From Trichosphaerium sp. ATCC 40318 (taxonomy: Eukaryota; Protista; Tubulinea): a stretch of 64,000 bases of DNA. A program made the translations under genes and the position numbers. The stretch is from positions 186,001-250,000 of the forward strand of contig JALMLS010000447.1 in the NCBI GenBank assembly GCA_038496445.1, read 5' to 3'. The notes below the pieces were generated by a model. That model saw only the letters and a list, made by a program, of their open reading frames with translations, made no database searches and was not told the origin of the DNA. The first letter of the stretch is position 1, and every line of letters begins with the position of its first letter. This document shows positions 6,001-63,405 of this stretch, one piece after another.

Positions 6001-9000
6001 TCTGTGTCTGGAAGTACGCCATCCATAGTAGTAAACATGTAGATGCCCATTGCGTTTGTCATTGTGTTGGCAACTTCAACACCCATTGAATCGAAGAGTA
6101 CAACAAGTACGTTTTCAATTTCAGTATCTCCACCATCTATAAATAGAATTGTAAGAAAACCGACAGTGATCAGCTTAATGAATCATACCTTGAACATTGT
6201 CTCCATTTTCATCAACAAAGACAAAGTCACCGATGAATTGAGCTGGTGTATTAATACCAAAATCGTTGTCGAGGTCATCATTACCAAGTGCTGGACTCAT
6301 CTGAAGAAAAGTAATTAGCAACAAATCGAGCTAAGCAAAAATCAAAGGCGTACAATATCAACACATGAAGCGCGATCAGGAGTGCCATCACCATCGACAT
6401 CGAACATTTGAAGAGATCCATCAGAGTCGATGGTATCATCTCCGCCAAAATCAGCAGTAACAGGTGCTTCAGTACTCAAAAGAAGTACACAGATCGTGTA
6501 CTGAGTTGAAGGCATAACACCGTCAGTAGTATCAAAAGAGTACATGCCCATGTTATCTGTGGTTTCTCTATCGATAACCATGCCGTTACCTGTGTCTGTG
6601 ATCGACACTTCTCTGTTCATTACAGGCATGTCTAGACCACCTTTGACAAGTTACAAACTTAAGTAAAAGTAGAAGGCGTACTTTGAGTGTTGTCACCATC
6701 CGAGTCAAAGAAGACAAAGTCTCCAATGTTGACAGTCAATGGTACAAATCCAAAATCATAGTCAGGATTCATCATGTTGATTGAAGGTGAGATCTAATAA
6801 ACAAATCAATAAAAACATTTTACAAAAAAAAAGGGAACGTACAAAGTCAACACAGGATACACGATCATCCATACCATCTCCATCAATGTCAACAGCACGT
6901 TCGTCACCATCAGAATCAATGGTGTCGTCCATACCAACTCCAGTGGCTGTTGGGTCGTTACCTGCTGGAACAAGAGCACATATAGTGTACATCAAGTCAG
7001 GTAATAGGCCGTCTGTTTCATCAAAGCCATAGATACCACTCATATCTGTTGTATCTGTTGCAATAACAGTTACATCTTGGATAAGTGCAACAAGTACACC
7101 ATTGATTCCGGTTTCACCCATTGAGATACCATTGTTATCAGAGTCGGTAAACACGAAGTCTCCAACAGATACAGTACCAGCGATGATACCAAAATCGATT
7201 GTATCATCTGTACCAGCAGTTGGAGAGGTGATGTCAACACATGAAGCGCGATCAGGAGTGCCATCACCATCAAAGTCAAAGGTAGTTATTGTACCATCTG
7301 AGTCAGTGGCTGCAGTACCCATTCCTGTTTGAGCAGGAAGGTCAAGAGGGAGAAGTTGAATACAGATGGTGTAATCTGTATTTGGTAGTACACCATCATC
7401 GGAATCGAAAGTGTATTCACCGTTCATGTCAGTGATATCGGTAGCGATAGGCGTGACATCATTGCGAAGGGTAATCACAATTCCTCTTCCTGGTATGTCT
7501 GCGTCACCACCATCTTGAATACCATCGTTGTTGTTGTCCATGAATACACGATTACCAACAACGACGTTGACAAATCCAAAGTCGAAAGTCAGGTCATTAA
7601 CACCAACATTAGGTGAAGTCTAAAAGTAATAAACAAGTTGAAGTGCTTTAAATAATTAACGTACAATTGTAACACATGAAGCACTATCGTCCATACCATC
7701 ACCATCGAGATCAATCATTGTTTCAGAACCATCAGAGTCGACAGCGTCATCGCCTCCAAAATCTGCAGTGATTGGAGCACGGTTTGTTGGTATTTGAGCA
7801 CAGATTTGGTACATAGTGTCTGGAAGTACACCATCCATAGTAGTGAACATGTAGATGCCCATGGCGTTTGTCATTGTGTTGGCAACTTCAACACCCATTG
7901 AATCGAAGAGTACAACAAGTACGTTTTCAATTGCAGTGTCTCCACCATCTTAAAAAAAGATCAGTAAGATTGTTTGTTATCACTTGAATTTTGTTATCTT
8001 TTTACCTTGAACATTGTCTCCATTTTCATCAACAAAGACAAAGTCACCGATGAATTGAGCTGGTGTATTGACACCAAAATCTATAGTCAGATCATTGGCA
8101 CCACCCGATGGGCTTGTCTAAAAAAAGCACGTGAGTTGCTGGCTGAATCATCCAGGAATCAAAGAAAAAAAAGAGGAAAAAAAAGTAAACGTACGAAATC
8201 AAAGCAAGAAGCACGATCGTCCATTGAATCACCATCAAAGTCGAAAGCTCCCAAAGCACCATCAGAATCAATACTGTCATCACCACCGACATCTTGCGTT
8301 ACAGGTACTTCAATAGGCAACAATTCGACACAGATTGTGTATTGTGTATTAAGGGTTAACCCATCACCTAAGTCGAAGCCGTAGTTGCCCATTGGGTCTG
8401 TTGTGTCTGTAGCTATTACTTGACCATCACTTCTTCTTATAAGTACGACTGTTCTACCATTTATAGGCATATCTCCTCCAGCTAAACATAAAAAGGTTAA
8501 CAAAGCCAAACAAAGGAAAAAAAGAAAAAAGTTCGAAAAAAAAGCAAAAAAAAAAAAAGCTTTTCAGCTCTGCTGTCACAAGTCGATTTCTTTTAATCAA
8601 GTTTTCTTTAAAACACAATTTCCTTGTTATAAATAGTATCTAATTACGGTAAAGATATCAAAAAATAATACGTACATTGTAGATTATTACCATCCATATC
8701 AAAAAATACAAAATCACCAATTAGTGTTGGAGGAACTATTCCGAAATCAATAGTAAAGTCGTCATTTCCATTTGGAGGTGTTGTTATATCTGCACAAGTA
8801 GCATCATCATCAGTTCCATCACCATCAAAGTCAAAAACACCCATAAGTCCGTTAGAGTCAACAGTGGCGTCCATCCCAACGCCATCCGGTGAAAGACCTT
8901 CATCACCAATGATTTGTACGCAAATTCTGTAGTTGGTATTTGGGGTCAACCCATCACCCGTATCAAAGGTGTATACACCGTCCCTATCGGTTTGAGTAGT

Positions 9001-12000
9001 AGCTACCACAGTACCATCTGTGAGTAGGATTGCAACATTACGACTTGCAACAGGTGTATCTCCTGCATCTAAAAGATTTGTTAGTCAAAAATATGTATTG
9101 GTTTTTGAAGAACATAGTTTTTTTTTTCTTAAACCGTACCTTGCAACCCATCTCCGTTATTATCGAAGAATACTTCATCTCCTACCTGTACTCTAGGCAC
9201 ATTTATAAAACCAAAATCAAAAGTTAAATCTGTATTGCCAAGAGCAGGTGAAGTCTATGAACGTTGTCAAAAAAACATATCAAAAATAAAATAATAATGA
9301 TAAAAAAAAGTGCGCCGTACGATCATCTGACAGAGTCCATCATCAAGGGATCCGTCACCATCAAAATCAAAGGCATTTAATGTTAATGTACCATCGGAGT
9401 CTATGGTATCATCCATTCCTGTGTTTGAGGCAGTAGGTACCATACCAGAAGGAAGAGGAACACAGATTGTGAAGTCTGTTGCGGCTTGTACATCAAATGT
9501 ATAGATACCCATTGCGTCTGTCAGTACGCTTTGAGAAAATACACCATTACTATCAAGAAGTACAACTATAGATGCTATTGGACTATCACCCATATCTAAT
9601 GATGATTTTTAGTTACAGTCCAAGAGCGTACATGCGAGGCAAAGAGTTTTTTTGTCCCCCCTGATTCTTATTTTTTTTCTTGAATAAAGTCGTACCTTGA
9701 ACACCGTCTTCGTTCACGTCAAAAAATACAAAATCTCCGATAGTAACAGGTGTAGGACAGATACCAAAATCAGCATTATGATCACGGAAAATGAATGTTG
9801 ACACAGGTACAGAAAACTCATAAGTGCTTCCACTTGCTAACATGAAATCGCTGTCATGTCTATCATTTGTACCAGCATCAGCTGGAGCTACTGTCGCTCC
9901 CCCTGTTAGTGCTGTGATGACAGCTTGTGAGACATCCACTGAGATTGTCCATGTTTCCATTGTAAATATAGGATTATTTAGGATCGTGAAGTAATAGTAC
10001 CTGCACAAAAAAGAGTTAAGCCCAACCAAAGAAAAAATTTGAAAAAAAAAAGCAGGTTTTAAGTTTCCGCGTACCCGCCGTTTGCTGTGGTCTCCATGTC
10101 TACAGCCATGCCATTATTACGGTCTAATGAAACAACAACATTGTCTATTCCAACCTCTATAGGGTCTTGTATACCATTACAGTTGAGATCAAACCAAATA
10201 AAGTTTCCTATCTGTGAAGGAGGCGCATCACATATTGGCTCTATCTCACCGACACCAGTTGCTTTATCAACAAAAAGGTCGCTACCATCAGCTCTGTCAT
10301 AAAAAGCATATGCAAGCTGCTTTACTCCAGTTTGTGTATTTTGGTTCGTAACACCTCCTGAGAAATCTCCTCTATTATCAAATGGATCTAACTGAGTGAA
10401 GATCATCTCTCCGGTACCTTGTTCAAAAAGTCAGAAAAAAAAAAACCCCAAATCACGTGATAATCCACGTGGTGTAATTTTTGTGCAAAATTTTTACTGA
10501 AATGAACTAGCTGTCTTGTAGATAACTAAGATACATACCAAGGATAGTAGTGATTGAACCCATGAATGTTTCTTGATGAAATTCTACTTCATCGCGCATC
10601 ATAGGATCATTAATGCGATCAGTGTAAACATCATCAGAAAAAAATTCGCCACCACCATCAGGTCCAAGTCCGAAATCAGCTCTGTTTCCAGGAAGCGCAT
10701 TATAGTCACCACACCGTGGACCGTTATTAATACCGCCAGAACCAACCTCAAGCGCGTATGTATCTATAAACAGAATATGTAAACAAATAATCTTTACCCA
10801 AAAAATAAAAAATCTTTTTGAAGTCCGTTTTAGTGACTTTGTTTAAAAAAGTGCTTACCGGAAGCTCTGTCATAACTAACACATAGAGCGTCACCTGTTA
10901 GATGAATTAGTTACAAAGTTGCTGAGTGATTCAAAAACAAATGAAAGAAGAAACTGGTTGTACCTCCGATATCTCCTAGATAATCAGTGTCAGCATCACC
11001 TGACTGACTTCCAAACCTATCACCAAAAGTGAGAATCATGTATCCATTCTCGTCGAATTCAATTCCACTCAATATAGGTTGCGGAAAGGCGGCTGTGGTT
11101 AAACAAGTAAGTTAACAGAACAAAGTATTTTCAGAACGTACTTTCAGGAAATGTTGAAAAAGGACACAGTATTGCGTCGAACTTTGTACTTTGCCAAGGG
11201 TTCCATTGTTGATATGACTCGATATTTAGTGTGGTACATAAAAACGCTTGTTCTCTTTGCCAGTCCATTGGAGCAGAAATAAGCTAAGAACGGAGAGAAA
11301 AGGTGAGACACGGTAGAGTAAAAAAAAAAAAACAAAAAAAACCCTCGTACAAGTGTCCATGTTAACCCAGATCCAAAGTTTGTAGGATCAGCTCTGTATA
11401 CATAAAAAGCCAAGTCGGCTGTATTGTTTGTACTTTCAGCACTGCAAACAACGCCAATGTATAAAAAGTCGTCGTGAAACCTTATTTTTGGTTAGTCTTT
11501 CGAAGAGACTTGTGTGCTGGGTCACGTGCACAAAAAAAATTACAAGTTTAAAACACTAAGACTTACGTTACTGCAAATGGTCTAACATCTTCGGTTGGAC
11601 ACTCACTGACCGCTATAAGAATGAAGAACGTCAGGAAACAAAGGAAAGAAGAATAGTAGTAAAATAATAAAAAAAAGATCACAGTTCATGAACAGTTAAA
11701 AAAAAAATCTGTTTGCTTTCGCCATCCTCCCTACTAGTACGTACGTGGGAATTGTATTGGTTCCGATGTAGCAACAGTAACGTCTCCAGGCGTTGCGCTA
11801 ATATCTGAAAATAGTGAGTGAGTTGTTTGCAAGAGCACAGTGATCCACAGTTTAATATGTTACAAGAAAAACAACAACATACCAACTTCCAATCGAAGTA
11901 CTTCTCTTGAGAACAAGTTCATAACAAACAAGAATTCCTCGTCATCACTCAAGTCCATACCACCAAACCCGTGTTTGAGAACAGTAGGGAATGCAGGGTC

Positions 12001-13788
12001 GTCAGCCACGTCAGTATTCAAACCACTTGGTTCCAAGTCATTATAATCATGAAGTGCATTTCTGCCCAAGTCAGTGGCTGGGAAACCCAGTGCTGCAGTG
12101 TCTATGAGTTGTGCCATATCGCAAGATGCCAGACTATTTATCCTAATTATAGTAGAAGGGCTTTGATTTGTGAGGTAGCCAGAAAATGACTTCTGATACG
12201 ACCCTAAACACTTCGTTAAAAACAAAGTAGTCCAAAAAAAAAAAAAAAAAAGGCCACTATACTAAGCCCTAGTATGTTCCTCTCCCCTTTTATCACCAAG
12301 ATATGAAATACGCACCCATGAATAACTGTCCTGTCAAAGTACTGTATGCCAGACCATAAACAGGGCCAGTTTCCGAACCTGTACAAATTCTAACAGGTGG
12401 GTCGTCCCTGCCATCATCTTCGTCCAAGAAAGGATCCACTACACCATCAGTATTCAATTTGGTTATCACAGTATCGTCGTCAGTTAAACTGTCAGGAATC
12501 CCTAATACACAAAATCTTGTTAGTTCTCAAAAAACAAAACCAAAGAGGGCGGGAAACACAAAACAACATTTTTCTTTTTCGTCCAAAGTCTTTTTGGCTG
12601 GGCCTTTATTGGCAAGACTACGTGCTATTTTTTTGTACTAGCATTTTCCATAGTGGGATTATACTAAAAGAGCTTTTTTTTTCCAGTCTGTCACGTGAAA
12701 ATTTCGCGAAGTTTCCAAAATACGGTAAAAAAAAAAGAAAAAGGGTTTGGGAGTCCCAAAGTCCACAACAAAAAAAAACCAAAAACACACCAGTTACGAA
12801 ACAAGAGGCGATAATATCTACCGAAACTCGTGAACCATCGACAACATCACCAACACAATAATCGTATGGATTTGAAAGAGGTATATCAGCAGATGCCGTA
12901 TTATCAAACGTGTATGTTCCCACGGCTGAAAAGAAGGAAAAAAAAAAGTTAGTACGAAAGAAAAGTGAACGAATGTGATTCAAGAAGTTTTCTTTTTGTA
13001 CCTCCGCCACCTACACCACTTGAATCTACAAATAAGCTTGGCATATCGAATATTTCTAGACGATGAGGGCCTAGTACATAGTCAACATAAATACTCCGCG
13101 AGTCTAGCTGGTCACGTGATAACAAAAAAAGTTCAAGATTATTCGGTGGAGAAAAAATCTCGAAGTGCTTTTTTTTTTTGTATCGATATTTGTTAATCAC
13201 GTGGCCATAGTTACAGTAAACTGAGTGTATATATATCTTTACCTGTAAGACCAGGGAAAGAATATTGACCATTAACATCTGTTGTTTGAGTTCCCACATC
13301 AGTATTTGTAGCATCAAAAGCATGTATCTCAACACCTTGTATACCTAAACACAAAAAACAATTATGGTTGGGCGTTTCGTGTGAGACGGTATCTAAGCTA
13401 CTAAAAACCTAACAAATATATAGACAGTGCTATAATGTATCTATGAATCTTGTACTTTCATCTGTTTTTATCACGAAGAGAAAGTTGTGTCACAAAAGGC
13501 ACCAAACTTCAAAAAAAAAAATTTCAAAATACAAAAAGTAACCCCGAAGGTTGTTAATCAATCGGAAAAAAGGCACGTGATAAGCACTTTTTTAGTAGGT
13601 CCGAGCGGTAAATGAAAAAGGTAATACTTTGGTCGGAGGATAAGATAGAGAGTCATACCAGGTTCTAAGGAGTCTCTGAACCCATCAAAGTCGAAATCTC
13701 TGTATACCGTTCCGGCTATCTGAGATAACGTAGGCGAAGCGAAAAACGCCAAGATCGCTATAACGATCATCGCCTTTGTATTATACAT
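1..13788 (-). CDS. Giant secreted SdrD-B/Cna-B-like repeat protein (colossin-like), multi-exon, 3' end beyond window
   Basis: N-terminus MYNTKAMIVIAILAFFASPTLSQIAGTVYRDFDFDG (signal peptide followed by a B-domain start). It is followed by a unique region of about 3 kb and more than 20 repeats of about 120 aa of the form (I/V)GD(F/L)VFxDxxxDGxQ...T(T/D)xxGxYxF...DSDG...TIDFG. Short GT-AG introns recur at equivalent positions in the repeats. Confidence 0.88.
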
Positions 13789-20967: not shown

Positions 20968-22795
20968 ATGGCAAAGCTTAACGTGTTGACACTCTTTTTC
21001 TTTGTTTATATTGGCCAAAGCACGTGTGGTTTGGTTTCAAGGTGTACATGGCAAAATAATACATACGCTCTGTATAATGATCTAGACGCTGACTCTTGCG
21101 AAATGGGTACGGTTTACTGCATTTAATAAAGTGGGCGAGCTCCTTGGCTTTATTGTTTTGTTTGCTTTGTAACACGTTATTATCGCTTTAGGCTACAATC
21201 ACCTCATATTAGACAGTATTATGGAAGCATCTGTAATGACTTTATTTCCCGTACGTTGGATAAACGATACACAATTCTGCCGTTTTCGTTTTTCTTTTTT
21301 TTGCCGTTCAAAATCACGTGCGTTTTCTTTATGTGTTTTCACTTTTTTTATTTTTTAGCCTTTGAGTTTGAATGTTACCTCGATAAACACCACGGCAGAC
21401 GTTATTGATTATTTTTGGTATGATGGCTCTCTTGTAAGTCCTATTGTGAGTAGAACTTTTGCTGGTAATTTGGTTGATGATAACAACTGTCCTTCACTTG
21501 TCGGAGGTGTACGCAACTTTCTCGTAATTAAAACAGTTCGAGTTTTTTCTTACATTCAACAGTTCATTCGGAATAATTGTGAATCAACCAATTTTGTTTG
21601 TGAAGCGCCTTCAGAGGATGTCCAACCAGTATCAACTCCTTGTGTTGAAATAACTCCGAATATATCTTGTGATCATAGAAGCTCTGTTTCATGTGCGGAA
21701 AAATATGAAGAAATGTTTTGTTCCTTTTTTTCTGATTTGTCTTTTCAGTTGCTTGCTATACAACTTTTTTGTCGCGACGTACATGGCCTGAAGCTCAAGG
21801 TAAGTATCAATAGTTTGATAATACATGTAACGTATATAGGCCTTTGTTTACAACAAGGTGGACACCTTGCAACAATAAACAGCGCTGAGGAGTTTGAGTT
21901 TGTTGGCGGTTTGTTACCTCTAGATAACACAAGTACAGGTAACTGTACATGGATAGGATTGACAAGTGGATACAGAAACGATCACTTTGACTTTCAATGG
22001 GTACGACAACTGCTAGCTAGCCATTCTATTTTTAGGATTTATTCGTATTCAAGGCAGTAACAAATGAACCACGTGTTTTTGGTGGTGAGTTTATGAAAAG
22101 CCCTTGGGGTTCTGAGGAGCCACAGAGCGTAGTGATTAGAGAAAATTGTGTATTGATGTGTGGGAATGAGTCTGTTGTTGAATGGGCTGATGTACATTGC
22201 CATCGAAGAGAACTCTTTGTTTGCGAGATTCAGCAACCTGGTATGAGTTAAACTCCTTGAGAGTTTGTTCATTCAACTCAACCTAGACATAACACTTATA
22301 TTTCTACTTAGGAGACTTTATACGAAATGATGTTGTTGTCCTCGTTGATTCAGACCTTTCCATTGATGGTACGAGTTTTGAAGTACCCACCAATACAAAC
22401 ATAGCAGTCTGATAACCTCCTTTAGGTACAGCTCGGTTCAACAACACGACACTTGAGATACGAAAAGTAAATACAATACTTAATGTTACTGGATGTATTG
22501 TGGGTTCATTTAAGCTTAATCTAATGTCAATTGTGGTACACACTCAAATACCTGTTGGTGATTCGAACTAATCACTTTATTGTATTTTTAGGAAAATTCA
22601 GTACTAATATCACAGAGTCAAGTGTGTGTAGAGGTAACGCCATCAGTTATCTTGCGTACAAACCAATGTCAGGAGCAAACAAGGGCATCAACATCATTAA
22701 CAAGAACTCTTGATATTTCGACTTTCAAGTGTGCTAGTAACACTCTCATTGGGTGTATTGTATTAATGCTTGCCATGGTTGTTTTGTTATTGTAG
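20968..22795 (+). CDS. Signal peptide + C-type lectin + GPI-signal protein, paralog A
   Basis: MAKLNVLTLFFFVYIGQSTC...SCEMG. CTLD motifs TWPEAQ, CLQQGGHLATINS, WIGL, PWGSEEPQ...ENCV...WADVHC...FVCE. Hydrophobic C-terminus CIVLMLAMVVLLL*. Confidence 0.85.
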
Positions 22796-30352: not shown

Positions 30353-30746
30353 GAAAAACACGTGTAAAACATGTCACTGTAAAATTTAAATGTTTACCAT
30401 TTGTTAACTTCCATACCAGTTGGCTATAAGTCGATACTATACCGCGCAAGATGCTGTTTTGTTGTAAGAAAGAGGTCTTGACCGCCTTTTGGCGTAGCTG
30501 TAAGCTAGACTTCCCTAAATTGTACCACTCCATCCAGATATTCAACAAAAATGTTATCTACCTAGTACTGGTTTTCTAATGACTTCTGAAGTTCTATAGT
30601 GCGGCTGTAGTCGTTGTCTTTGTTTTTCTGTTGTTAACATGGCGTTCCATTCTATAGACCTTGTGATGAGAAGGAGAATTTCTACCAAATGATTTGGCGT
30701 ATTTTCTATTTGCTTGGCTCTCAACAACTTTTTTTTGAAAATCAAA

Positions 30747-30903: not shown

Positions 30904-31384
30904 GTGTATGCACTTTCAGGAAGGCAGGGATGTGTGCGGAGATTATCCCAAACTCAGGAAAGTAAATAAGCACATGTAATTAATGACTTTGTTTCGTTTT
31001 TGTTTTGTTTATGTTGTCCATTGAGAAACTAGTTTTTTTCCTACAAAACCTAACATCAAGAAATGGTGTGAACTATTTGTGTGACAATGTATGGTTACGC
31101 AACTTATACTATTAGATGCTCCTGTTCAATGTGATTGGAATGTAACACTTGAATATAAGCGTATTTGTCCATGGCTATGATGCAAGGGACAAAAGATACA
31201 AAATTTAGAAATCACGTGATAAAACTACGGAACAAGTTAACCAATGCCTTAAGATTACAAAAACACTCACTGTATGAGTCTTTGAAGGCCAATAAACAAG
31301 GTACACGATTTGAGAATAACTTCCCGATTATTTTTTTTTTGCTACCAAATACCAAATACTTGAATTTCAAAACAAGCTTCGACT

Positions 31385-33217
31385 ATGACTTCAAGAGTTA
31401 CATTACTGGCATTGTTTATGTTTATTTATATCTCTAACAGTATGTGCGCAGTTGTTTCGAGATGTTTTTGGCAAAATACAACATACACGCTCCATAATGA
31501 TACAGACAACGATTCATGCGAAATGGGTAATGTTTCTATGAGAAAGGACCTTTATTTTCCCCACTTATTTATTTTCTCGTAGGATTTAACCCTCTTGTAC
31601 TTGACAGTATTATGGAAGCATCTGTAATGACTTTATTTCCTGTACGAGAGCACAAATTTTAATCCTTTTATTTTATCTCCAAATCATGTGTTTGTTGTTA
31701 AAAAGGTTGAATAGCGATTACGTTTGAATATCACCACTTCAAACAGGACTGATTACTTTTGGTATGATAACTCACTTGTCAATACCATCGCTATGCATCT
31801 ATTGGATGCATATAGAGGAAGCCCTATTAATGATACCAACTGTCCTACACTCCATAGAGGCGTACAATGTTTTTTCGCAAAATAATTTGTTGACGTTTTT
31901 TAATCTTTTGATAGTTCATACAAAATAGTTGTATTTCAGATCATTTCGTTTGTGAAGCTCCCTCTATCAACGTTCAATCAGTAACAACACCTTGTGTAAA
32001 ACCACCAGATAACGTATCTTGTGATCACTACAACACCTCCGTCTCAGGTATTGAAAACAAAAAGAAATATGATATTCTCCTTATTTTTTACAAACAATTT
32101 CCAGGTAATTGCTACAACCCTATTCTTTTGACTTATACATGGCCTGAAGCTCAAGGTACTCTTGCGTTTTATTAAATACTCATCAATTACAATAATAATA
32201 TGTTATCAATAGCACATTGTTTACAACAAGGAGGACACCTTGTAACAATCAACAACAACGCAGAGCTCAATTTCGTTGGCAGTATAGTACCACTTGGTGT
32301 AACGCTAACACGTCAAGCATGGATAGGATTGGCAAGCGGATACAGAGATCACCTTGACTTTCAATGGGTGCCTTAGTTTGTTTTCTTATTTAGCGAGTAA
32401 CACTGAATGCAATCAGGCAGTAACAAATGAACCACGTGATTTTGGACAAGAATTTAACGTATCCCCTTGGCGTGAAACTGACCCAGGAAGAGATGATAAA
32501 GAAAGTTGTGTACTAATACTCCAATACGAGGGAACATTATCATGGCATGATATAATATGCGATTCAGCGCATTACTTTATATGTGAGATCGAATCAGCAG
32601 CTCCTCCAACACGTATGTGATTAAACATTAATATTTTATGAGTTATACTTACATCCACACCAACAGATTCTCCAACAAAAGGTATTCAAGATAACTTTAA
32701 TAATGCCGTAATATCGGTTCATCTTCATGGTGTTGTGAGGTGTTAGTTACTAACTTGTTGTTAGATTTTATACCAACTGATAGTGTTGTTGTACTTGACT
32801 TTGATGTTTCTATTGATGGTACAAGCGTATTTCATTATTTAGTGACTAACAGACTTCAAAGGCGAAGCAAGGTTCAATAACACAATAATTCAGCTGAGCA
32901 AAAGCCAAACAGTATTTGAAGTGAGCGGTTGTATACTTGGTCCATTTAACATTGATGCAACATCAATTGATGTACACTACAATTTACTCATTTTAGCATA
33001 ACGTGGGTTGTAGGAAGCTTCAATACAGATATCGCAGAGTAAAGGATGTGAAGAGGTTACACCAATGGTTCTTTTGGATGGAACTCAATGTGATGAGCAA
33101 ACAAGATCAACAACATCAGCTTTAAGTATATTCACAGTGAGGGTTTTCAAGTGTAGCACTCAAACACTCAGCGTGTGTATTGTATTAATTCTTTTCATGC
33201 TACTCTTGATATTGTGA
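31385..33217 (+). CDS. C-type lectin GPI-signal protein, paralog B (about 11 exons)
   Basis: MTSRVTLLALFMFIYISNSMC. CTLD HCLQQGGHLVTINN...AWIGL...PWRETDPGRDDKESCV...WHDIICDSAHYFICE. C-terminus CIVLILFMLLLIL*. Confidence 0.88.
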
Positions 33218-33866
33218 ATTGAAAACACGTGTTAATATTAATATCTCAATCAAACACTTCTTTTCTAATCAACGAACATTACTTCCTTGCGCTTGCTTTT
33301 TAGCAAAGCGTTGTCACCTTTGTAAAGGTATATAATGAAACTCACATAGTTCTTCTTTGTCAGTGTAGCTTCTTTGTCTCCACGCAATCACAAGATAATA
33401 AACGTATTACAGGAGACAAAAGGGTTGAAATATAATCACATCACTCATTCTACAAACTACGGACAAATTGAACTTAAAAAACGCTTGTTTCTATCTCTAT
33501 CAAAGCGCACTAAACGCTTTTAGCATGCCAAAGCTCAAACCTTATCGATAGGCCTATTCAAACCATCAACAAATACAATTCTTGTACTTTGGGTAAGGAT
33601 TTTACGAGATGTTTATATATCTTGATAGCTGACAAAGCAGGTACAGATATTATCTGTCTCATTCAAGGTTTACTATTATTTCCTATAAAGTGAGTTCTTA
33701 ACACTTTTAGCAGCTCTAGCAAGAATTGACGCCTTTATTGTTTGGTTGACATCTGTACCTTAACTCGCCAACCTTCCTTAGGTCTCAAACGTCCATAAGA
33801 CAGTTTTACGCATTAAATTAATAAGATACGTATGTATTTTACTGGAATATAAATACCTCAAGAACC

Positions 33867-36868: not shown

Positions 36869-36975
36869 CTCAAGAACACTATGTGAAAAGACGAAAACAA
36901 GCAAACACCAAGTGTTCGTGCACAGTTGATAAGAAAGAAGTAGTTTGATTTTAACACGTGTTTTCTTATTCAATT

Positions 36976-38803
36976 CTACAATATCAAAAGTAGCATGAAA
37001 AGAATTAATACAATACACACGCTAAGTGTTTGAGTGCTACACTTGAGAACCCTCACTGTGAGGATACTTACAGATGATGTTGTTGATCTTGTTTGCTCAT
37101 CACATTGAGTTCTATCCAAAAGAACCATTGGTGTAACCTCTTCACATCCTTTACTCTGCGATATCTGTATTGAGGCTTCCTACAACCCACGTTATGCTAA
37201 AATGAGGAAATTGTAGTGTACATCAATTGATGTTGCATCAATGTTAAATGGACCAAGTATACAACCGCTCACTTCAAATACTGTTTGGCTTTTGCTCAGC
37301 TGAATTATTGTGTTATTGAACCTTGCTTCGCCTTTGAAGTATATTAGATAAACTGGAATTAAATCAACAACAGTACCATCAATAGAAACATCAAAATCAA
37401 GTACAACAACACTATCAGTTGGTATAAAACCTAACAACATTGTTAGTAACTAACACCGTGAAGCTAGAACTGATACTAGGTCATTAAAAAGTTTTCTTGA
37501 AATACTTGTTGTTGGAGAATTTGTTGGTGTGGATGTATGTAAGTATAACTCATAAAATATTAATGTTTAATTACATACGTGTTGGAGGAGCTGCTGATTC
37601 GATCTCACATATAAAGTAACGTGCCGAATCGCATGTTGTATCATGCCATGATAATCCTTCGTATTGGAGTATTAGTACACAACTTTCTGTAGCATCTCTT
37701 CCTGGGTCAGTTTCATGCCAAGGGGATACGTTAAATTCTTGTCCAAAATCACGTGGTTCATTTGTTACTGCCTGATTGCATTCAGTGTTAATCAACAAAC
37801 GCTAAATAAGAAAACAAACTAAGGCACCCATTGAAAGTCAAGGTGATCTCTGTATCCGCTTGCCAATCCTATCCATGCTTGACCACGTGTTAGCGTTACA
37901 CTAAGTGGTACTATACTGCCAACGAAATTGAGCTCTGCGTTGCTGTTGATTGTTACAAGGTGTCCTCCTTGTTGTAAACAATGTGCTATTGATAACATGT
38001 TATTATTGTAATTGATGAGTATTTAATAAAACGCAAGAGTACCTTGAGCTTCAGGCCATGTATAAACCAAAAGAATAGGGTTATAGCAATTACCTGGAAT
38101 TGTTGTAAAAAATAAGGAGAATATCATCTTTCTTTTTGTTTTCAATACCTGAGACGGAGGTGTTGTAGTGATCACAAGATACGTTATCTGGTGGCTTTAC
38201 ACAAGGCGTTGTTACTGATTGAACGTTGATAGAGGGAGCTTCACAAACGAAATGATCTGATGTACAACTATTTTGAATGAACTATCAAAAAGATTAAAAA
38301 ACGTCAACAAATTATTTTGCGAAAAAACATTGTACGCCTCTATGGAGTGTAGGACAGTTGGTATCATCAATGGCGCTTCCTCTATATGCATCCAATAGAT
38401 GCATAGCGATGGTATTGACAAGCGAGTTATCATACCAAAAGTAATCAGTCCTGTTTGAAGTGGTGATATTCAAACGTAATCGCTATTCGACCTTTTAATA
38501 CATACACGTGATTTGGAGATAAAAAAAAGATTAAAAATTTGTGCTCCTCTCGTACGGGAAATAGAGTCATTACAGACGCTTCCATAATACTCTCAAGTAC
38601 AAGAGGATTGAATCCTAACCGAGTAAATAAACTATTTGGGAAAATACACTCGGTCTCATACCCATTTCGCACGAATCATTGTCAGGATCATTATGGAGCG
38701 TGTATGTTGTATTTTGCCAATAACATCTCGAAACAACTGCGCACGTACTGTTGGAGATGTAAATAAACATAAATAATGCCAGTAATGTAACTCTTGAAGT
38801 CAT
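36976..38803 (-). CDS. C-type lectin GPI-signal protein, paralog C (inverted near-copy of B)
   Basis: MTSRVTLLALFMFIYISNSTC; PWHETDPGRDATESCV...WHDTTCDSARYFICE. Most introns are near-identical to paralog B. Confidence 0.88.
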
Positions 38804-39795
38804 ACTCGAAGCTTGTTTTGAAAGTCAAGTATTTGGTATCTTTTAAAAAAATGTGATCGGAAAGTTCTCAAATTGTGTACCTTGTTTGTTGGCCTTCAAA
38901 AACTCACGTAGCGAGTGTCTTTGTAATCTTAAGGCGTTGCTTAACTTATCGTAGTTTTATCACGTGATTTCTAAATTTGTTATCTTTGGTCTTGCATCAT
39001 TGCCATGGGCAAATTACATTTCAATCATTGAACAGGAGCATCTAATAGTATAAGTTACATACCCATACATTGTCATACAAATAGTTCGCACCATTTGATA
39101 GAAGTGTCAATTCTTGGTAGAGCTGCTAAAAGTGCTAAGAACTAACTTTCTAAAATAATACTAAAACCTTGATTGAATTAGCAAAAAAAACGTTCCAAAT
39201 TCGCACCAACTCCGCAGCTACGCTTGCTAGTAAACTCAACCAAATGCTAACTACTCTCCTATATGCGAAATACCGATTTAGACGCAAAGAAACTATCCGC
39301 ATAATGTTACATTTTTCCACAAGTTGCTTTTCGGCCCAGTTATGCAACGAATGAGACAGATAATATCTGTTCCTGCTTTGTCAGCTATCAAGATATCTAA
39401 ACATCTCGTAAAATCCTTAGCCAAAGTACAAGAATTGTATTTGTTGATGGTTTGAATAGGCCTATCGATAAGGTTTGAGCCTTGGCATGCTAAAAGCGTT
39501 TAGGACGCTTTGATAGAGATAGAAGAAAGCGTTTTTTTAAGTTCAATTTGTCCGCAGTTTGTAGAATGAGTGATGTGATTATATTTCAACCCTTTTGTCT
39601 CCTGTCATACGGTTTATTATCTTATGATTGCGTGGAGACAAAAGAAGCTAGACTGACACAGAAGAACTATGTGAGTTTCATTATATACCTTTAAAAAGGT
39701 GACAACGATTTTCTAATAAAAAAGGAAGAGTAATGTTCGTTGATTAGAAAAGAAGTGTTTGATTGAGATATTAATATTAACACGTGTTTTCAATT

Positions 39796-41625
39796 CTACA
39801 ATATCAAAAGTAGCATGAGAAGAATTAATACAATACACACGCTAAGTGTTTGAGTGCTACACTTGAGAACCCTCACTGTGAGGATGCTTAAAATTGATGT
39901 TGCTGATCTTGTTTGCTCATCACATTGAGTTCCATCCAAAAGAACCATTGGTGTAACTTCTTCACATTCTTTACTCTGCAATATCTGTATTGAAGCTTCC
40001 TAAGGTACATGTGATTAAGTTAGAGTGGATATCGTTGTTTACTTCAATTGATGTTGCATCAATGTTAAATGGACCAACTATACAACCGCTCACGTTAAAT
40101 ATAGTATTGCCTTTGCTCAGCTGAATTATTGTGTTATTGAACCTTGCTTCACCTTTGAACTCTGTTACTAAATAATGAAATACAAATTGTACCATCAATA
40201 GAAACATCAAAATCAAGTACAACAACACTATCAGTTGGTATAAAATCTAACAACATTCCAACCTTAGTAAACATCTTTCAAAGACAATACCTGTTGTTGG
40301 TGTATCAGATGGTGCGGCTGTTGGCACTGATGTTGGCAAAACTGAAATGAACAATATTGTTATATCTTTGTTAAGTTCTAACAATATCCTTACCTGTAGG
40401 TGCTGCTATCGTTGTAGGTACTGTTGGTGGGTCTATCTCACATATAAAGAGTTCTGTTCTGTCACAAGTAATATCACCCCACAATACCCCTGCAGTATAA
40501 TTGCGCATGAATACACAATTTTCTTTGCTGTCGTTTCCAGGCTCATTTTCCTGCCAAGGTACTACAAAAAACTCTCTTCCAAAATCAAGTGGTTCATTCG
40601 TTACTGCCTTTGTATGTGTTAATTGATAGTAGGGTTAAGACCTATTAGTACCCATTGAAAGTCAAGGTGAGTTCTGTATCCACTTGTCAATCCAATCATT
40701 GCAGTATAACCTCGATCTACACTTTCTAGAGGTAAAATAGTTCCAATGAACTTATACTCCTCATCGCTGTTGATTGTAACAAGATATCCGCCTTGTTGCA
40801 AACAATGACCTATTTGATACCGTTATTGATATCTACTTTTTCGGTAGTACCTTGGGCTTCAGGCCATGTGTAACGCATTTCAAAAGGATTATAGCAATGA
40901 TCTATATTAAATCAACAAATAACGGAGAACGAAACAAGTTTTTAACTGAATACCTGAGCTCATATGCTCACAAGATATATTTTGTGATATATCTATGCAA
41001 GGTTTTGATACTGGTATAGTATCACTGGAGGGTGCTTCACAAACGAAATGATCTGAGGAGCAATTACCGTTTTGTATGATCTACCACAAAATAGGTGATT
41101 TAATACTGTTTGCAAAACCTATTGTACGCACGCCTCCCTGAAGTGTAGGGCAATTACTGTCGTTTATAACACTTCCTTGATATGCTACACCCATAGCAAT
41201 GTTATTGACAAGCGAGTTATCATACCAAAAGTAATCAATACTGTTTGAAGTGGTAATATTCAAACGTAATCGCTAATCAACCTTTTAAACAAAACACGTG
41301 ATTTGGAGATAAAAAAACATAAAAAAAACCCACGTGATTCTTTCATCGGTTAGTTTTGTGGACGTACGGGAAATAAAGTCATTACAGATGCTTCCATAAT
41401 ACTGTCTAGTACAAGAGGATTGAATCCTAACCAAGGAAAATGTAATTATTACGGTAAATAAGGCTATTCAGTTTGGCAGTTACCCATTTCGCATGAATCG
41501 TTGTCTGTATCATTATGGAGCGTGTATGTTGTATTTTCCCAAGTACACCTTGAAATAACTGCGCACGTGCCCATAGTTATGTAAACATATAAAGCGAGTG
41601 CAGACAGAGCATTACTTGAGGTCAT
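39796..41625 (-). CDS. C-type lectin GPI-signal protein, paralog D
   Basis: MTSSNALSALALYVYITMGTC; QQGGYLVTINS; PWQENEPGNDSKENCV...WGDITCDRTELFICE; C-terminus CIVLILLMLLLIL*. Confidence 0.85.
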
Positions 41626-42056
41626 ACGAGCTTTTGATGTCAGGCGTATGTAAAAAATGTGATTGGTTTTGTTATATTTAAGACGACTACCGCATGCGTC
41701 AATCTTCAAACATGTACCATCGAGGACCTTTTTCTATGTACTTGACACTCAAATTGGCTGTTTCGTTTCAATACCAGAATTTATTGTCACGTGCTAACAA
41801 ATGTATCGCAAACCATCTAAAATTGGTCTTATCACAAGTGAACATCTTATCCACTTTGCTTTTAACCACGTGATGACTTGTCATTCCAACATGCATTCTC
41901 CTGATGAGTCTTCGTTTACTATTTCCAAAATTAATTGATAAATAGTGAAGATTTTTTCAACTGACTGTTCTTGGCGCCTGCAAGAATCTAGCGTGTAGTA
42001 ACATTTAAACATGCGGTATAGTTTAGTGGTTTTGAAAAGTTTATTAAGACACGTGA

Positions 42057-43251
42057 TCAAACACGATCAATCTTACATGCTTCTTCACAAGTAATTTGAG
42101 TGCCATCATAGTAAAACTCAACGCAATTCTCCATCAAATATGGTATACACTCATTTGTTACCAGACCACAGGAATTTACCATAATACATTCAGCTTTCGT
42201 CAAAGTCTTAATACCTTCATCAGTAACAAGTGAACATTCGCTCAAATCGATTACTTTAACACCTTTTAAGCCAACAGCTCTCACTCCAACATCAGTGATG
42301 GCTGTGCAACCTGAAACATAAAGAATGCTAATACCTGCAAGAGCTATGAGTGAAGCATCTGTTATAGAAGTCTGACAAAGAACTGCAGAATAGCAACCTC
42401 TAAGTGCTTTGACACCTTCATCTGTTACACGAGTACAACTGTTAATATTGATCGTATGTACACCTGCCAATGCCTTTAGGCATTCATCTGTTACAGGTAA
42501 GCGTCTTAAATTAACAGTATGAACACCAGAAAGCGTAAAAAGTCCTTTAGAAGTCAGATTATTGCAACACGTGAGGTCTATTGTTTTCACTCCTTTAAGT
42601 GCTTCAAGACCCTCATCTGTGATAGCTGCACCGGCAAGATAGATAGTATGGACTCCTTTTAATGCTTTAATACCTGTATCAGTGATAGACTCGCAATTCT
42701 CAAGCAGTATAGTATGGACACCTTGAAGTGCTATCAACGACTTATCGGATATCTTAGTTGCTGATAAATCGATTGTATGGATCCTTCTCTTGTTGTTTGA
42801 AACAAGTGACAACACCCCAGTATCAGTTATCTCAGAGTGCGACAAACCAATGGCATGTATGTTGCTGAGCTCTGCCACACATTCATCTGTGATATTAGGA
42901 GTATAAGAAGCATCAACGTCTCGTACATTAGCCAAAGATTTAAAGTCCGAAACTGTCAAATCGTTCATTTGAGATAAAATGATTTTTGTGTTTTTGAGAA
43001 GCGGATTGCCGTCTAGTAGTTTTAATGCGCTCCTTGAGCGTATACGTATTTCACCATAGCCAATACGGTGCCTAACGATGGTCGATAAGGCTTTACAAGT
43101 TTGAGCGGCTGTATAACGCAATTTGATATTGCCAACGCGTATAATAAGCGTTAGCATATCTATTGGTAGGTCCAGAATACATTGTGGACGCAAGTCGCTA
43201 CAGCTGAGTTAAATGATGTAGAAAAACCCTTAATTTGCTTTTGTACCTCAT
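42057..43251 (-). CDS. F-box-like + leucine-rich repeat protein (FBXL/AMN1-like)
   Basis: 5-nt first exon ATGAG|gtacaa...ctgtag (intron 43198-43246) gives MSDLRPQCILDLPIDMLTLII (F-box-like). About 12 LRRs of the type LxGVHTIxLxxxxITDxG lie in one uninterrupted exon. Confidence 0.85.
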
Positions 43252-53471: not shown

Positions 53472-55274
53472 ATGATAAAGCTGACCTTAGCACTTCTTTT
53501 TCTATGTATTTATACGAGCGAAAGCACGTGCTCAGTCGTTTCGAGGTGTTTTTGGGAAAATACGACCTACACGCTTCATAATGATACAGATAACGATTCA
53601 TGCGAAATGGGTATGTTATAATAAATGGGTAAATGACTTTTACTTACCAAAAGTTTTTTACGGATTTAGGCTACAATCCCCTCAAACTGGACAGTATTAT
53701 GGAAACATCAGTCATGACATTATTTCCCGTACGTCGCGTAACATCTTTTGAAGCGACTTGGATTTTTCTTCAAATCACGTGGTTTTTAAAAAGTTGTTTA
53801 GCCGTTACGTTTGAATATAACCAGTTCAAACAGTACTGCTTTTTTTTGGTATGACAACTCACTTGTAAGTCCCATGGCTATGTATAGAGCGTATCCTATA
53901 AGTTTCATTGATGATAGCAACTGTTCTACACTTGTAGGAGGCGTGAGTGCTTTTTTTTCTGTAGCGTGAGATAATGTTTTATTGATCGCTTTTACATAGT
54001 TCATTGCAAATACTTGCACCTCAGAACATTTTGTTTGTGAAGCACCTTCGGACACTGTCCCTTTTGTATCTACACCTTGTTTTAATCCAATACCAAGTGT
54101 GTGTGATTACAGGAGCTCTGTTTCAGGTATGTAGAAAATGAATCAAGAAATATTTTGTCTGATACAAAATTTCTTTAATTGATGTTTAGATTCTTGCTAC
54201 AATCCTGTTTCAACACGTCGTATATGGCCTCAAGCACAAGGTACATAACAAAAAAATTATCGCATTTATAAACAAATACAAGTTCTATTAGAAGCCAATT
54301 GAACAGTACAATAACTTTTACAATAGCGCATTGTTTACAACAAGGTGGATATCTTGTTACAACCACCAACGATGATGAGTTGGATTTTATTTCTGGTTTG
54401 ATACCACCAGGTGTACGAAACTGTACATGGATTGGATTGACAAGTGGATATAGAAACGATCACTTTGACTTTCAATGGGTACTCCCACAAACTATTAAGT
54501 CTTAAGGGTGCACGTGCCCCCTTAAATCACAAGTCAATTTAATCCAAAATACACTTAGGCAGTAACAAATGAACCACGTGATTTTGGTGATGTATTTAAG
54601 GAACACCCTTGGAGTCCAGTTGAGCCAAATGATCATACAATTGATGGCGGTATCAAAGAAAATTGTATTATTATGTGCAATAGTAGGCCAAGTATATGGG
54701 CTGATGTACATTGCTATCGGGGCGAGTTCTTTATTTGCGAGATTGAAATACCCAAGGGTATGCTGAGATAAGTGATTTGTCCGTCAGTAACTGGTTTTTT
54801 GTAGGGTCTTTTATACCTACTGATAGTGTAGTTGTAATAGACTCGGATCTTATTATTGATGGTAAGGTATTTCATGTTTACACTCACACTGATTCTTTTC
54901 AAGGTTTGGCACTGTTCAGCAACACAACACTTCAATTAAGAAAAACCAATACAATATTTAATGTGAGTTCATGTATCATTGGGGAGTTTAACATTGATAC
55001 AACATCTGTTGAGGTACCACACCTGAATTAATTGTCACGTGATCAAATTAATCGCTCAATGTATTTATAGGCAGCTTCAATACAGATATCACAACTAAAA
55101 GGATGTGACGAAGCTGATCCAATGGTTCTCTTGGGCAGAAATCAGTGTCTTGAGCAAACTAGATCATCTACATCACTGTTGAGCACTCTCAATGTAGCGG
55201 TTTTAAAATGTAACAGCCATAAGCTTACTCTGTGCGCTGCATTACTTCTCATCATAGCTTTTTTGGTATTTTAG
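53472..55274 (+). CDS. C-type lectin GPI-signal protein, paralog G
   Basis: MIKLTLALLFLCIYTSESTC; HCLQQGGYLVT; CTWIGL; PWSPVEPNDHTIDGGIKENCI...WADVHCYRGEFFICE; C-terminus CAALLLIIAFLVF*. Confidence 0.85.
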
Positions 55275-55813: not shown

Positions 55814-56587
55814 TTATCGCTTTCTCATAGGCTCTAATCTATCAAAAATATAACAGTTTGCCTCGGCTGCAACGATCTCTCTATCTTCATCTTTGCTATT
55901 CTTCTTACTATGATAACTTTCTACTAGTCTCTTAACCCTTAACGAGTCTGAAGAGTCGCTATAAGGCAATGATGATATCAACTCTTGTTCTGTTAGTTTA
56001 TCGACGTTTATCTTTTGTTCGACGCTGTTCTTCGTTATAAGTATCTGTTTGCCATCCTTGAACTTGGACATAGCTTGTTCTAAGAGCCTATTGATTGGGA
56101 GGAAAGGATATTCAAAAATAAACGTAAACATAGCACCGCGAGGGCCAAATGTTGTATTATGAAGGGGCATCATTGGATTTGCAGCGTTATGAAACGAATG
56201 GTTGTAAAAAGCTACAGAAGGCATTTCTTTTATCGGTAACACTTCCATTGCGCCCATTATACGCTGTACGTTCTTCGCTGATATCAAAGAATCATGATTT
56301 GGTTCTACGTCTCTGGTATCGTTTACAATATAGTTTGATATCTCGCAACCACTTTGGTAAAGCTCTTGAGACAATACTACGTCAGCTGAAGCGTTTCCAG
56401 ACCCTAAACTCAAAATGCGTAGCTTGTTCAGAGTCGTAGGCGGTGCGTTCCTGTTGATGTAATCAACTACAACTCCAGCATTACTCGATTTAAGCATGTC
56501 AGAACATGTGTTAATCGCTCGAACACCTATCGTTTTCTTACGCGCATAAGTTGTTTGTTGTGTGGCGAACCGCGTGGCTCTAAACAT
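55814..56587 (-). CDS. Intronless putative class I SAM-dependent methyltransferase-like protein, possible mitochondrial presequence
   Basis: 257-aa ATG ORF. Arg/Thr-rich acid-free N-terminus MFRATRFATQQTTYARKK. Motif I-like LRILSLGSGNASAD, motif II-like YIVND, and AFYNHSFHN. Confidence 0.5.
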   Translation of the reverse strand: MFRATRFATQQTTYARKKTIGVRAINTCSDMLKSSNAGVVVDYINRNAPPTTLNKLRILSLGSGNASADVVLSQELYQSGCEISNYIVNDTRDVEPNHDSLISAKNVQRIMGAMEVLPIKEMPSVAFYNHSFHNAANPMMPLHNTTFGPRGAMFTFIFEYPFLPINRLLEQAMSKFKDGKQILITKNSVEQKINVDKLTEQELISSLPYSDSSDSLRVKRLVESYHSKKNSKDEDREIVAAEANCYIFDRLEPMRKR

Positions 56588-59760: not shown

Positions 59761-59792
59761 GTCTACAATCACTTGGGTTTTTTTTTTCAAAA

Positions 59793-62505: not shown

Positions 62506-63405
62506 TTACATAACCTTACGCCAAGGAATCTTGACAATTTATGACCATGATACTGATTGTTGAAAGATTATCTGAGATGTATCTCGTTCTATCACTAAGG
62601 GCAATGACCTACAAGTGTTATGTGGTTATGACGGATCGGTCATAATAGCTTGTTGGTGTAACAACAGCTAGCGAGATGACTCAAGGAATAGATTTATTGA
62701 ATATTTGAAGTTTTCACGTGCTCAAATACTTTGTTATTACATCGCTATCTTGCGCTTGTGTGACGTCTAAGTTTTGTAACTCCATCTGTTGTTTCGCCAG
62801 TCTTTTTTTCGCTGACAGTGCTCTGCAATTCATTTAAAGTGCTTTCAGGGGAAAAATACAACTATTCTGTTACTGTTGGTATACTCTAACTTTTGAGTAG
62901 TCTCATATTGCGACATTCAAGCAGTCTATCTGCAGTTACTATTTCGTAGTGGCCCACATTATGCCGAAATGCGAACACAAGTAAAATCCTTGTCAATTCC
63001 TCCTTAAAAACAATACCGATTTATTGTTAGATGAGAGAAGTAAGAAAATTCTCCTTTACAACCAAATATAGCGCTATGTACTTAACATGTTAATACATGG
63101 TTTAGTTTCCATACCTAACCTTTGTACCCTTACAATGTTGTTGTATTCTATTGTTGCTATTTCCTTTCTTTGAATACATTCTACTTATGTTCGTGTTCTC
63201 ATGTGGCATCATCAATACTTGGAACATGTGAATTGTATTTGGATTCAAGAATATTGAATTATCTATTGCATTCTTTTATGTTGTTCCAAAGAACGACATG
63301 ACCTGTTGATGTCATTGCTCCAATTACAAACTCAATAGAGAATTTTTCTCTAAGCAGTTGAAGAAAAAGTAAAAAATGTGTCAGTGACACAGCAGTCAGC
63401 TACTC

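Follow-up and report, generated by a model that had tools for sequence, protein, structure and literature searches.

CACGTG as a candidate highly iterated palindrome in the nuclear DNA of the protist Trichosphaerium sp.

Described systems based on short palindromic or iterated words

The closest described system is the cyanobacterial highly iterated palindrome HIP1 (GCGATCGC), the cause of which is described as unresolved (PMC5861425). The word CACGTG in the window, i.e., the whole 64-kb stretch of Trichosphaerium sp. DNA analyzed here, resembles HIP1 in being a short exact palindrome that is found roughly once in every kb or gene, within coding sequence as well as outside it, that is positionally conserved beyond background and that has no evident gene-level function (PMC5861425). 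A many-fold excess over Markov backgrounds, present in coding and non-coding DNA and independent of the reading frame, is found at this locus, and sites are conserved beyond background among paralogs. In contrast to HIP1, the word resides in a eukaryotic nuclear genome with introns, the locus being intron-bearing with spliced transcripts, and it is a 6-mer with a CpG centre, whereas GCGATCGC is an 8-mer containing GATC. The excess differs as well, with 15-300-fold for HIP1 and 6-8-fold here (16-fold in introns). HIP1 has further been linked to cognate orphan methyltransferases and to a periodic distribution over long ranges (10-90 kb).

CACGTG is also the core of the E-box/G-box, which is bound by bHLH-ZIP and bZIP dimers such as Cbf1, USF, Myc/Max, TFE and the plant GBFs. 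The palindromic core, recognized by two-fold symmetric dimers, is common to both, the flanks found here are symmetric and suited to a dimer, and the T preferred before the core (TCACGTGA) resembles Cbf1/USF/TFE-type sites. However, known E-box/G-box sites cluster in promoters and enhancers, accept variant words and are not known to exceed expectation several-fold throughout introns, exons and UTRs genome-wide. In enterobacteria, very-short-patch repair makes its cognate word (CCWGG-related) more frequent and near-cognate words rarer. It thereby constitutes a precedent for a sequence-specific repair that boosts its own word, and a drive of this type has been proposed for very-short-patch repair and considered for HIP1. 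Very-short-patch repair is, however, a bacterial process that depends on Dcm methylation and the Vsr nuclease, and in the window the CpG-transition neighbour CATGTG is not depleted. Furthermore, intronic DNA signals that license expression are known, such as the periodic A/T clusters of the C. elegans germline and the motifs of intron-mediated enhancement in plants. Like CACGTG, these are DNA-level motifs enriched in introns or transcribed regions, acting on chromatin or expression, but they are degenerate, A/T-rich or non-palindromic, and none is known to be an exact 6-mer palindrome with a further enrichment at synonymous exon sites.

Abundance and distribution of CACGTG in the window

The window contains 62 copies of CACGTG by exact count, which matches the about 62 of an earlier first-pass annotation in number and in the positions listed. 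All copies lie within 8128..62720 (no strand assigned), the first starting at 8128 and the last at 62715, with a mean spacing of 895 nt (CV 0.83); positions 1-8127 hold none, as had been noted for 1-8100. Markov models predict 7.3 copies at order 0, 11.0 at orders 1 and 2, 15.0 at order 3 and 30.2 at order 4, and across 100 dinucleotide-preserving shuffles the word turned up 10.4 times on average (sd 3.2, maximum 19). As the expectations from Markov orders 0-2 and from the shuffles run at 7-11 against 62 observed, the measured excess is 5.6-8.5-fold, so that the over-representation reported earlier stands but its size of about 10-fold does not. CACGTG is the top non-homopolymer hexamer at every order from 0 to 4: at orders 0-1 it is the most deviant 6-mer behind the A6/T6 runs, and at orders 3-4, where it is still in excess, it ranks first outright. 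The excess in the window is thereby confirmed as real.

That base composition, paralogy or dispersed repeats merely simulate this excess has next to no probability. It would be in line with an artefact that the paralogous repetition of five positions accounts for 15 of the 62 copies and that the order-4 model halves the excess; yet under that model, which already holds the pentamers of the word itself, CACGTG remains 2-fold over and at rank 1. Duplication of the lectin genes accounts for only part of the excess, as had been supposed: 47 positions are independent, and with all later paralogous copies masked 40 sites are left in 42.4 kb against 4.7-6.3 expected (O/E 6.4-8.6). The flanks do not behave like those of a dispersed repeat or MITE, as no position carries more than 0.3 bit of information and almost none is left beyond the four letters next to the word on each side; an extended palindrome was found at 54511 only, and Rfam and tRNA scans gave nothing overlapping CACGTG sites. 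As a negative control, the same count on 23 unrelated contigs, which are distant relatives (24-45% identity) from a protein-guided scan with the LRR gene, gave an O/E of 0.8. Protection of the CpG from methylation decay was rejected as sole cause, since CpG O/E is 0.71-0.92, which leaves little decay for CACGTG to escape, and protection cannot raise a word above expectation. A general perfection of quasi-palindromes was rejected too, as no other palindromic hexamer stands out.

The excess extends to every compartment. Compartments were taken from our own approximate gene models, and because the gene finder (third parameter set) still fuses neighbouring genes, predicted introns longer than 250 nt were counted as spacers. 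On these approximate models short introns hold 21 copies in 12.9 kb (O/E about 16; three of the intron sites, at 13113, 13198 and 49152, may be exonic), spacers and UTRs reach an O/E of 7-12, and exons hold 17 copies in 32.3 kb (O/E 2.4, exon range 2.4-4.3). Longer introns are favoured, in agreement with the first-pass annotation, the word being present in 18 of 73 introns of 70-250 nt and in 1 of 105 introns below 70 nt. The closest pair, 12 nt apart, lies in a predicted 121-nt intron (10454..10471, no strand assigned). Exonic copies occur at synonymous positions in all three codon phases, with 16 observed against 4.0 expected (3/8/5 against 0.45/2.8/0.8 by phase, from codon statistics on joined coding sequence, homology searches having used single exons); the two most securely exonic ones are 42568..42573 (minus strand) within a long LRR open reading frame and 51682 in a MORN exon. 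The spacing of the copies fits an exponential distribution (KS p 0.54), i.e., a Poisson-like scatter without clustering and with even density over 56 kb.

The flanks of CACGTG are two-fold symmetric (AAtCACGTGaTT, read as AA-T-CACGTG-A-TT) and show no bias relative to the gene strand. AAAA runs oriented toward the core are found at 25% of non-coding half-sites and at 13% in controls (p 0.008), and TTTT runs are not enriched at these half-sites. Only the exact word is enriched (CATGTG O/E 0.92, CAGCTG 1.2), without the graded enrichment of CANNTG or CACGTN words expected of E-boxes: all one-letter neighbours together amount to 191 against 214 expected, and the outer neighbours NACGTG/CACGTN are depleted (52 against 76 expected), whereas the central variants CATGTG, CAAGTG and CAGGTG show no depletion.

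Two stretches lack the word. The first, 1..8100 (minus strand, GC 42%), belongs to an intron-bearing gene of SdrD_B repeats in tandem units of about 900 bp; 6.9 kb of it is exon of this SdrD-like repeat protein and only four of its introns reach at least 70 nt. Only 5 of the 82 amino-acid contexts of the window that are compatible with CACGTG fall within the whole gene model. The gap is thus explained by a protein composition that hardly permits the word and by minimal introns. The second stretch is a putative MULE, which a Pfam search did not confirm and which, with 1.8 kb free of CACGTG, is too short to count statistically. The idea, based on these stretches, that foreign or young DNA lacks the word was rejected as evidence, and the hint at self-marking that had been drawn from them is not supported. 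Searches with the SdrD-like exon returned only giant repeat proteins (32-44% identical), one of which, when looked up, sits in a bacterial context, and for an orphan gene of 257 aa no homologue was found; these results give no indication of a recent transfer and reveal no close relative.

Conservation of the word among lectin paralogs

The lectin paralogs are 61-89% identical. In comparisons tested among these paralogs, which are not phylogenetically independent (about 10 groups), CACGTG is kept in 56-63% of cases against 16-27% for other hexamers, i.e., about three times as often, in exons and non-coding DNA alike. Group A is an orthologous intron site (21315..21320, plus strand, with further copies at 38505, 41295, 45101, 47286 and 53776; the seventh paralog carries CATGTG at 31685), where AAATCACGTG forms an invariant island within an otherwise indel-rich intron of seven paralogs. 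Group B is an orthologous exon site (32433..32438, plus strand, also 22070, 37750, 44368, 46552 and 54575), in which the codons CCA CGT GAT (Pro-Arg-Asp) of the C-type lectin domain are identical down to the synonymous choice in six of seven paralogs, position 40586 reading CACTTG. Group C lies in exon 1 (41564..41569, minus strand, also 21021 and 53525; an RNA contig covers 41483-41627), and five other paralogs carry variants differing by one or two letters, several of them CpG transitions (CACATG).

Persistence is thus uneven, with groups A and B retained in six of seven copies and group C in three of eight. In the youngest pair of paralogs (89% identical) three of five sites are common, which is about the neutral expectation. 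The introns of lectin D are supported by transcript-like contigs over 36900-42899, obtained from three small sequencing runs; its 95-nt intron at 41273..41367 (minus strand) contains two copies of the word, at 41295 and 41331. An exact 29-nt lectin exon pattern gave no match among metagenome contigs.

Possible causes of the excess

The excess, the symmetry and the conservation suggest that the exact CACGTG duplex would be favoured at fixation at all places where the sequence can vary freely. As cause we tentatively favour, with somewhat less than even confidence, dense and weakly selected sites for a dimeric E-box-type reader over a repair or conversion drive specific for the word. CACGTG would then be a genome-wide iterated palindrome of the nuclear DNA of this protist, and its reader would most likely be a dimer with two-fold symmetry that recognizes the DNA duplex, probably an abundant bHLH-ZIP factor of the E-box type. 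The sites, at a density near one per kb or two to three in each gene, may be kept through weak selection and would serve as a general mark of chromatin or transcription units, not as gene-specific promoter switches; possible benefits are that genes are kept open or that nucleosomes are shaped beside the outward-facing A-tracts. The excess and its survival of paralog masking, its strength where coding constraint is absent, the symmetry, the oriented A-tracts and the conservation among paralogs were counted in favour of such a reader, and the uneven persistence of groups A and B versus C fits selection on a subset of sites. Against it speak the enrichment of the exact word only, as selected binding sites usually show graded tolerance, the synonymous sites hit in all three phases, which look like a blind push at the DNA level, the exponential spacing together with the lack of a distance preference from gene starts, and the near-neutral sharing in the youngest pair. 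Chromatin organization and methylation, both named in the first-pass annotation, are possible roles, and its interpretation is partly supported overall.

It is conceivable, though short of probable, that CACGTG represents the first case of a highly iterated palindrome in the nucleus of a eukaryote. A fixation bias specific for the word would have brought it to about one copy per kb across introns, spacers, UTRs and synonymous exon sites, be it through a repair or conversion system directed at CACGTG or through a genome-wide "self" or chromatin mark with a dimeric reader, and its strength would suffice to reshape codon choice. In cyanobacteria, exact palindromes in great excess have posed an unsolved puzzle for decades; as far as literature searches reach, they have not been described for eukaryotic nuclei, and a comparable excess was found reported for no other eukaryote. 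A eukaryote with introns, chromatin, sex and CpG methylation enzymes would offer a second independent system of iterated palindromes, in which it can be asked whether words are kept by function or by selfish or repair-driven bias. Practically, the excess distorts codon usage and splice-site statistics, will mislead gene finders and the discovery of motifs in this genome, and may serve by composition to tell native from recently acquired DNA.

A neutral word-specific drive is possible but rather unlikely. A CACGTG-specific protein would bias mismatch repair or gene conversion toward the exact word, for instance an enzyme that nicks DNA or repairs mismatches in connection with a site-specific methyltransferase, and the word would accumulate without serving the cell. 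The exact-word specificity with depleted outer neighbours, the excess in all compartments including synonymous sites of three phases and the Poisson-like scatter agree with this, and a fixation bias would likewise yield above-background conservation among paralogs. It is at odds with the undepleted central variants, with the strong differences in persistence from site to site and with the conserved flank AAAT and oriented A-tracts, which extend past the six letters. To our knowledge no eukaryotic drive of this kind is known, and literature searches found none.

Ordinary E-box/G-box elements in promoters or enhancers, through which a bHLH or bZIP factor would co-regulate its genes, are an improbable cause, even if the word is the classical core and every position of a compact genome lies near some promoter. 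Some sites do lie 160-300 nt upstream of lectin gene starts (31213, 38961, 41788), among them 31213..31218 (plus strand), which precedes the ATG of lectin B by about 170 nt and has its paralogous copy at 38961. Most sites, however, are found within introns, exons or 3'UTRs of unrelated genes, at uniform density and without a preferred distance from gene starts in the window, and synonymous exon sites are affected too. The 12-16-fold excess in introns is also far higher than promoter motifs are known to reach. The earlier view that the word is not an ordinary promoter element holds; the sites scatter over introns, exons, UTRs and spacers, and lectin duplication does not explain them.

Still less probable is an RNA-level signal, i.e., an intronic splicing enhancer or branch-region element combined with a 3'-end signal past stops. 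It draws on the peak of density in introns of at least 70 nt, on the conserved group A site, which in several paralogs precedes the 3' splice site by 20-25 nt, and on five genes with the word 1-15 nt past the stop. These are a SNF2-like gene (30359..30364, plus strand, 6 nt past the stop), a single-exon F-box/LRR gene at 42057-43193 (42050..42055, minus strand, 1 nt), lectin B (33226..33231, plus strand, in the 3'UTR 8 nt past the stop) and the paralogous copies of the latter at 36955 (15 nt) and 39781 (9 nt in lectin D, a gap read by eye from the flanks, within an mRNA contig). The proximity to stops reported earlier is real, but as three of the five genes are paralogs only three cases are independent, and a role in termination is not supported as it was put forward. 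Nor is one in splicing: only about 10% of introns carry the word, offsets from splice sites vary, the flanks are symmetric relative to the transcribed strand and spacers and exons hold sites as well, so that neither strand specificity nor a fixed distance in most introns or genes was found.

Very improbable, finally, is that the sites are left behind, or are targeted, by mobile DNA or programmed DNA elimination, for example as a palindromic target that precise excision restores or as tiny palindromes that are inserted. The density of about one per kb recalls that of eliminated sequences in ciliates, and two singleton sites lie in copy-specific insertions, namely 41331 in one specific to lectin D and 54511 in one absent from the other lectin paralogs, the latter at the centre of a near-perfect palindrome of 24 bp that is flanked by TTAA (54500..54526, no strand assigned); but insertion at existing sites followed by precise excision creates no new copies, 60 of the 62 sites have no extended palindrome or common flank, and the other gains and losses among paralogs are point changes or a 3-nt indel.

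Excess of CACGTG and its sequence context

The palindromic hexamer CACGTG, the core of the E-box/G-box, occurs exactly 62 times in the window as counted by pattern search (first copy at 8128, last at 62715), in accordance with the number and positions reported in the first-pass annotation. In 100 dinucleotide-preserving shuffles of the window, a mean of only 10.4 copies was found (sd 3.2, maximum 19), and Markov models predict 7.3 (order 0), 11.0 (orders 1 and 2), 15.0 (order 3) and 30.2 (order 4) copies, so that the observed-to-expected ratio (O/E) is not near 1 at orders 3 and 4. The excess persists under the order-4 model, which already includes the pentamers of the word itself. Among 6-mers, CACGTG is the most deviant after the A6/T6 runs at orders 0-1 and ranks first outright at orders 3-4. 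The over-representation is therefore real, while the ten-fold excess initially claimed is reduced to 5.6-8.5-fold. No other palindromic hexamer is conspicuous in the window, and the same count in 23 unrelated contigs yielded 34 copies vs 43 expected. The analysis covers this single 64-kb window, in which spacing of the copies fits an exponential distribution (CV 0.83, KS p 0.54) and the variance/mean ratio per 2 kb is 0.78.

The enrichment is limited to the exact word: its 18 one-letter neighbours amount to 191 vs 214 expected, with the outer neighbours NACGTG/CACGTN depleted (52 vs 76 expected) and the central ones not. Escape from CpG decay as the cause was rejected due to the CpG O/E of 0.71-0.92. 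The flanks carry little information, the preference being for T at -1 preceded by A at -3 and -2, mirrored on the other side (AA-T-CACGTG-A-TT). When the sites are aligned by gene strand, their two sides differ no more than by chance. AAAA runs toward the core are found at 25% of non-coding half-sites vs 13% of controls (p 0.008); TTTT runs near non-coding copies are not enriched. Extended palindromes around the word are absent except at 54511, where a 24-bp near-perfect palindrome (54500-54526; TTAAGGGTGCAC/GTGCCCCCTTAA) is part of an intron insertion missing from the other lectin paralogs and may represent a very small mobile or hairpin insert.

Distribution over introns, exons and gene ends

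The window is without annotation, and gene models were built with a small self-trained gene finder of our own making, which fuses adjacent genes; hence, predicted introns above 250 nt were counted as spacers. A spliced transcript contig from a public run, covering the C-type lectin paralog lectin D, agrees with the models for introns 40247-40290 and 40607-40650 (boundaries within 1 nt), and the small exons predicted at 40851-40901 and 41368-41426 are compatible with the parts of the contig that did not align. The gene finder missed the 43-nt intron 39999-40041, placed the next intron 11 nt off and added a false 28-nt intron (40366-40393). By this contig, the copy at 39781 is in the 3'UTR and that at 41564 in the 5' exon. 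Copies 41295 and 41331 lie in an intron taken from the gene-finder model, which the contig's unaligned 58 letters fit. Lectin D introns in the contig are very short with 40-44 nt (39999-40041, 40151-40190, 40247-40290, 40607-40650). The 5' splice-site consensus of the 178 predicted short introns is GTACGT instead of the usual GTAAGT (+4 C 56%, +5 G 57%; e.g., 31642, 41272), GTACGT being the commonest donor hexamer (23/178); none of the five predicted GC donors reads GCACGTG.

With these approximate gene models, short introns contain 21 copies in 12.9 kb (O/E about 16), spacers and long gaps 24 in 18.8 kb (O/E 7-12) and exons 17 in 32.3 kb (O/E 2.4, or 4.3 without the SdrD gene, a gene with SdrD_B repeats at the window start). 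The copies at 13113, 13198 and 49152 are intronic by model, yet fall within long open frames and could belong to exons, which leaves the ranking unaffected. Longer introns often carry the word, as had been noted earlier: 18 of the 73 introns of 70-250 nt do so vs 1 of 105 below 70 nt, a near-absence to be expected if no sequence is free to vary in minimal introns. Given amino acids and codon usage, 16 exonic copies were observed where 4.0 are expected, and these occupy all three codon phases (3, 8 and 5).

The word follows the stop codon by 1-15 nt in the SNF2-like gene, the LRR gene and lectins B, C and D, the 9-nt gap of lectin D being read by eye from the flanks as the gene finder misplaced the end of this gene. 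All five cases named in the first-pass annotation thus stand, but only three are independent among about 14-20 gene ends since the lectins are paralogs; roughly 0.4-0.5 are expected, and placement at gene ends is suggestive, if thin.

Paralog comparison and possible causes

The lectin genes form a set of 7-8 paralogs with identities of 61-89%, as shown by window self-comparison, which also revealed a tandem SdrD-like array. Five orthologous positions recur: an intron site (21315, 38505, 41295, 45101, 47286, 53776), an exon site with the codons CCA CGT GAT (22070, 32433, 37750, 44368, 46552, 54575), an exon-1 site (21021, 41564, 53525), a 3'UTR site directly past the stop (33226, 36955, 39781) and an upstream site (31213, 38961). 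Their repeats account for 15 of the 62 copies, leaving 47 independent positions, and after masking of later paralogous copies (21.6 kb) 40 remain in 42.4 kb vs 4.7-6.3 expected. Lectin duplication explains only part of the excess, as had been supposed, and the data exclude an artefact of composition or paralogy.

Among aligned paralogs that are 60-89% identical, CACGTG is kept in 56-63% of comparisons vs 16-27% for other hexamers, in exons and non-coding DNA alike; these figures derive from about 10 orthologous groups with non-independent comparisons. Most clearly, six paralogs share AAATCACGTG unchanged within the second lectin intron, the seventh having CATGTG, while substitutions and indels abound in the remainder of this intron. 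Losses are mainly CpG transitions (CATGTG, CACATG). Among the gains, the one at 37884 came with a 3-nt in-frame insertion, and those at 41331 and 54511 with insertions confined to a single paralog. The youngest pair, lectins B and C (89% identical), has 3 of 5 sites in common, near the neutral expectation. Separately, a 29-nt exon start, GCAGTAACAAATGAACCACGTGATTTTGG (32417-32445 and paralogous positions), is nearly identical in nucleotides, synonymous positions included, in six lectin paralogs that are elsewhere 61-75% identical.

What emerges is a preference for exact CACGTG at the DNA level, symmetric between strands, wherever the sequence is free to vary. Tentatively, the word may be kept because densely spaced binding sites for a putative dimeric reader, a DNA-binding protein probably of E-box type, are weakly selected. 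A drive by CACGTG-specific biased repair or conversion, which we regard as only slightly less likely, is favoured by the exact-word specificity, the depletion of neighbour words and the effect at synonymous sites; the conserved flank, the oriented A-tracts and the uneven persistence of sites lean toward a functional reader. As both are fixation biases they predict the same equilibrium, and the data do not separate the two. An ordinary promoter element, already doubted in the first-pass annotation, and a dispersed repeat are excluded by the data, as is the splicing or termination role it had proposed, at least as a general signal, given flanks that are alike by gene strand and only three independent gene ends.

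The nearest described phenomenon is HIP1, the highly iterated palindrome of cyanobacteria, which is likewise over-represented, positionally conserved and unexplained (PMC5861425); another word, another strength and a eukaryotic genome set the present case apart. Full-text literature searches, with incomplete coverage and hence as absence of evidence only, turned up neither an excess of CACGTG across a genome nor a highly iterated palindrome described for any eukaryote.

Window start and other loci

The reported absence of CACGTG from 1-8100 was confirmed. The first 8.1 kb consist of 6.9 kb of exon of the intron-bearing SdrD gene and 1.2 kb of introns, only four of them at least 70 nt long, and the whole gene model supplies just 5 of the window's 82 amino-acid contexts able to spell the word, so that no special explanation is needed. 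The giant SdrD gene (1-10430, minus strand) consists of tandemly repeated units, each about 900 bp long, and has a GC content of 42% vs 36% elsewhere. Its best relatives, giant repeat proteins, show 32-44% identity; the one examined (P0007, locus L001) adjoins groEL/groES on a bacterial metagenome contig.

The stretch 34416-36225, labelled MULE in the first-pass annotation, is indeed free of the word over 1.8 kb, which is uninformative, and its identity as a MULE was not confirmed, no single open frame matching Pfam. A single-exon ORF of 257 aa (55814-56587, minus strand) belongs to no Pfam family and had no homologue in a word search of 5.8 billion proteins. The LRR repeat segment 42396-42520 is partially matched by very many distinct transcript contigs (summed depth about 258 vs 2-25 nearby), which points to an extensive family of related LRR genes that are expressed.
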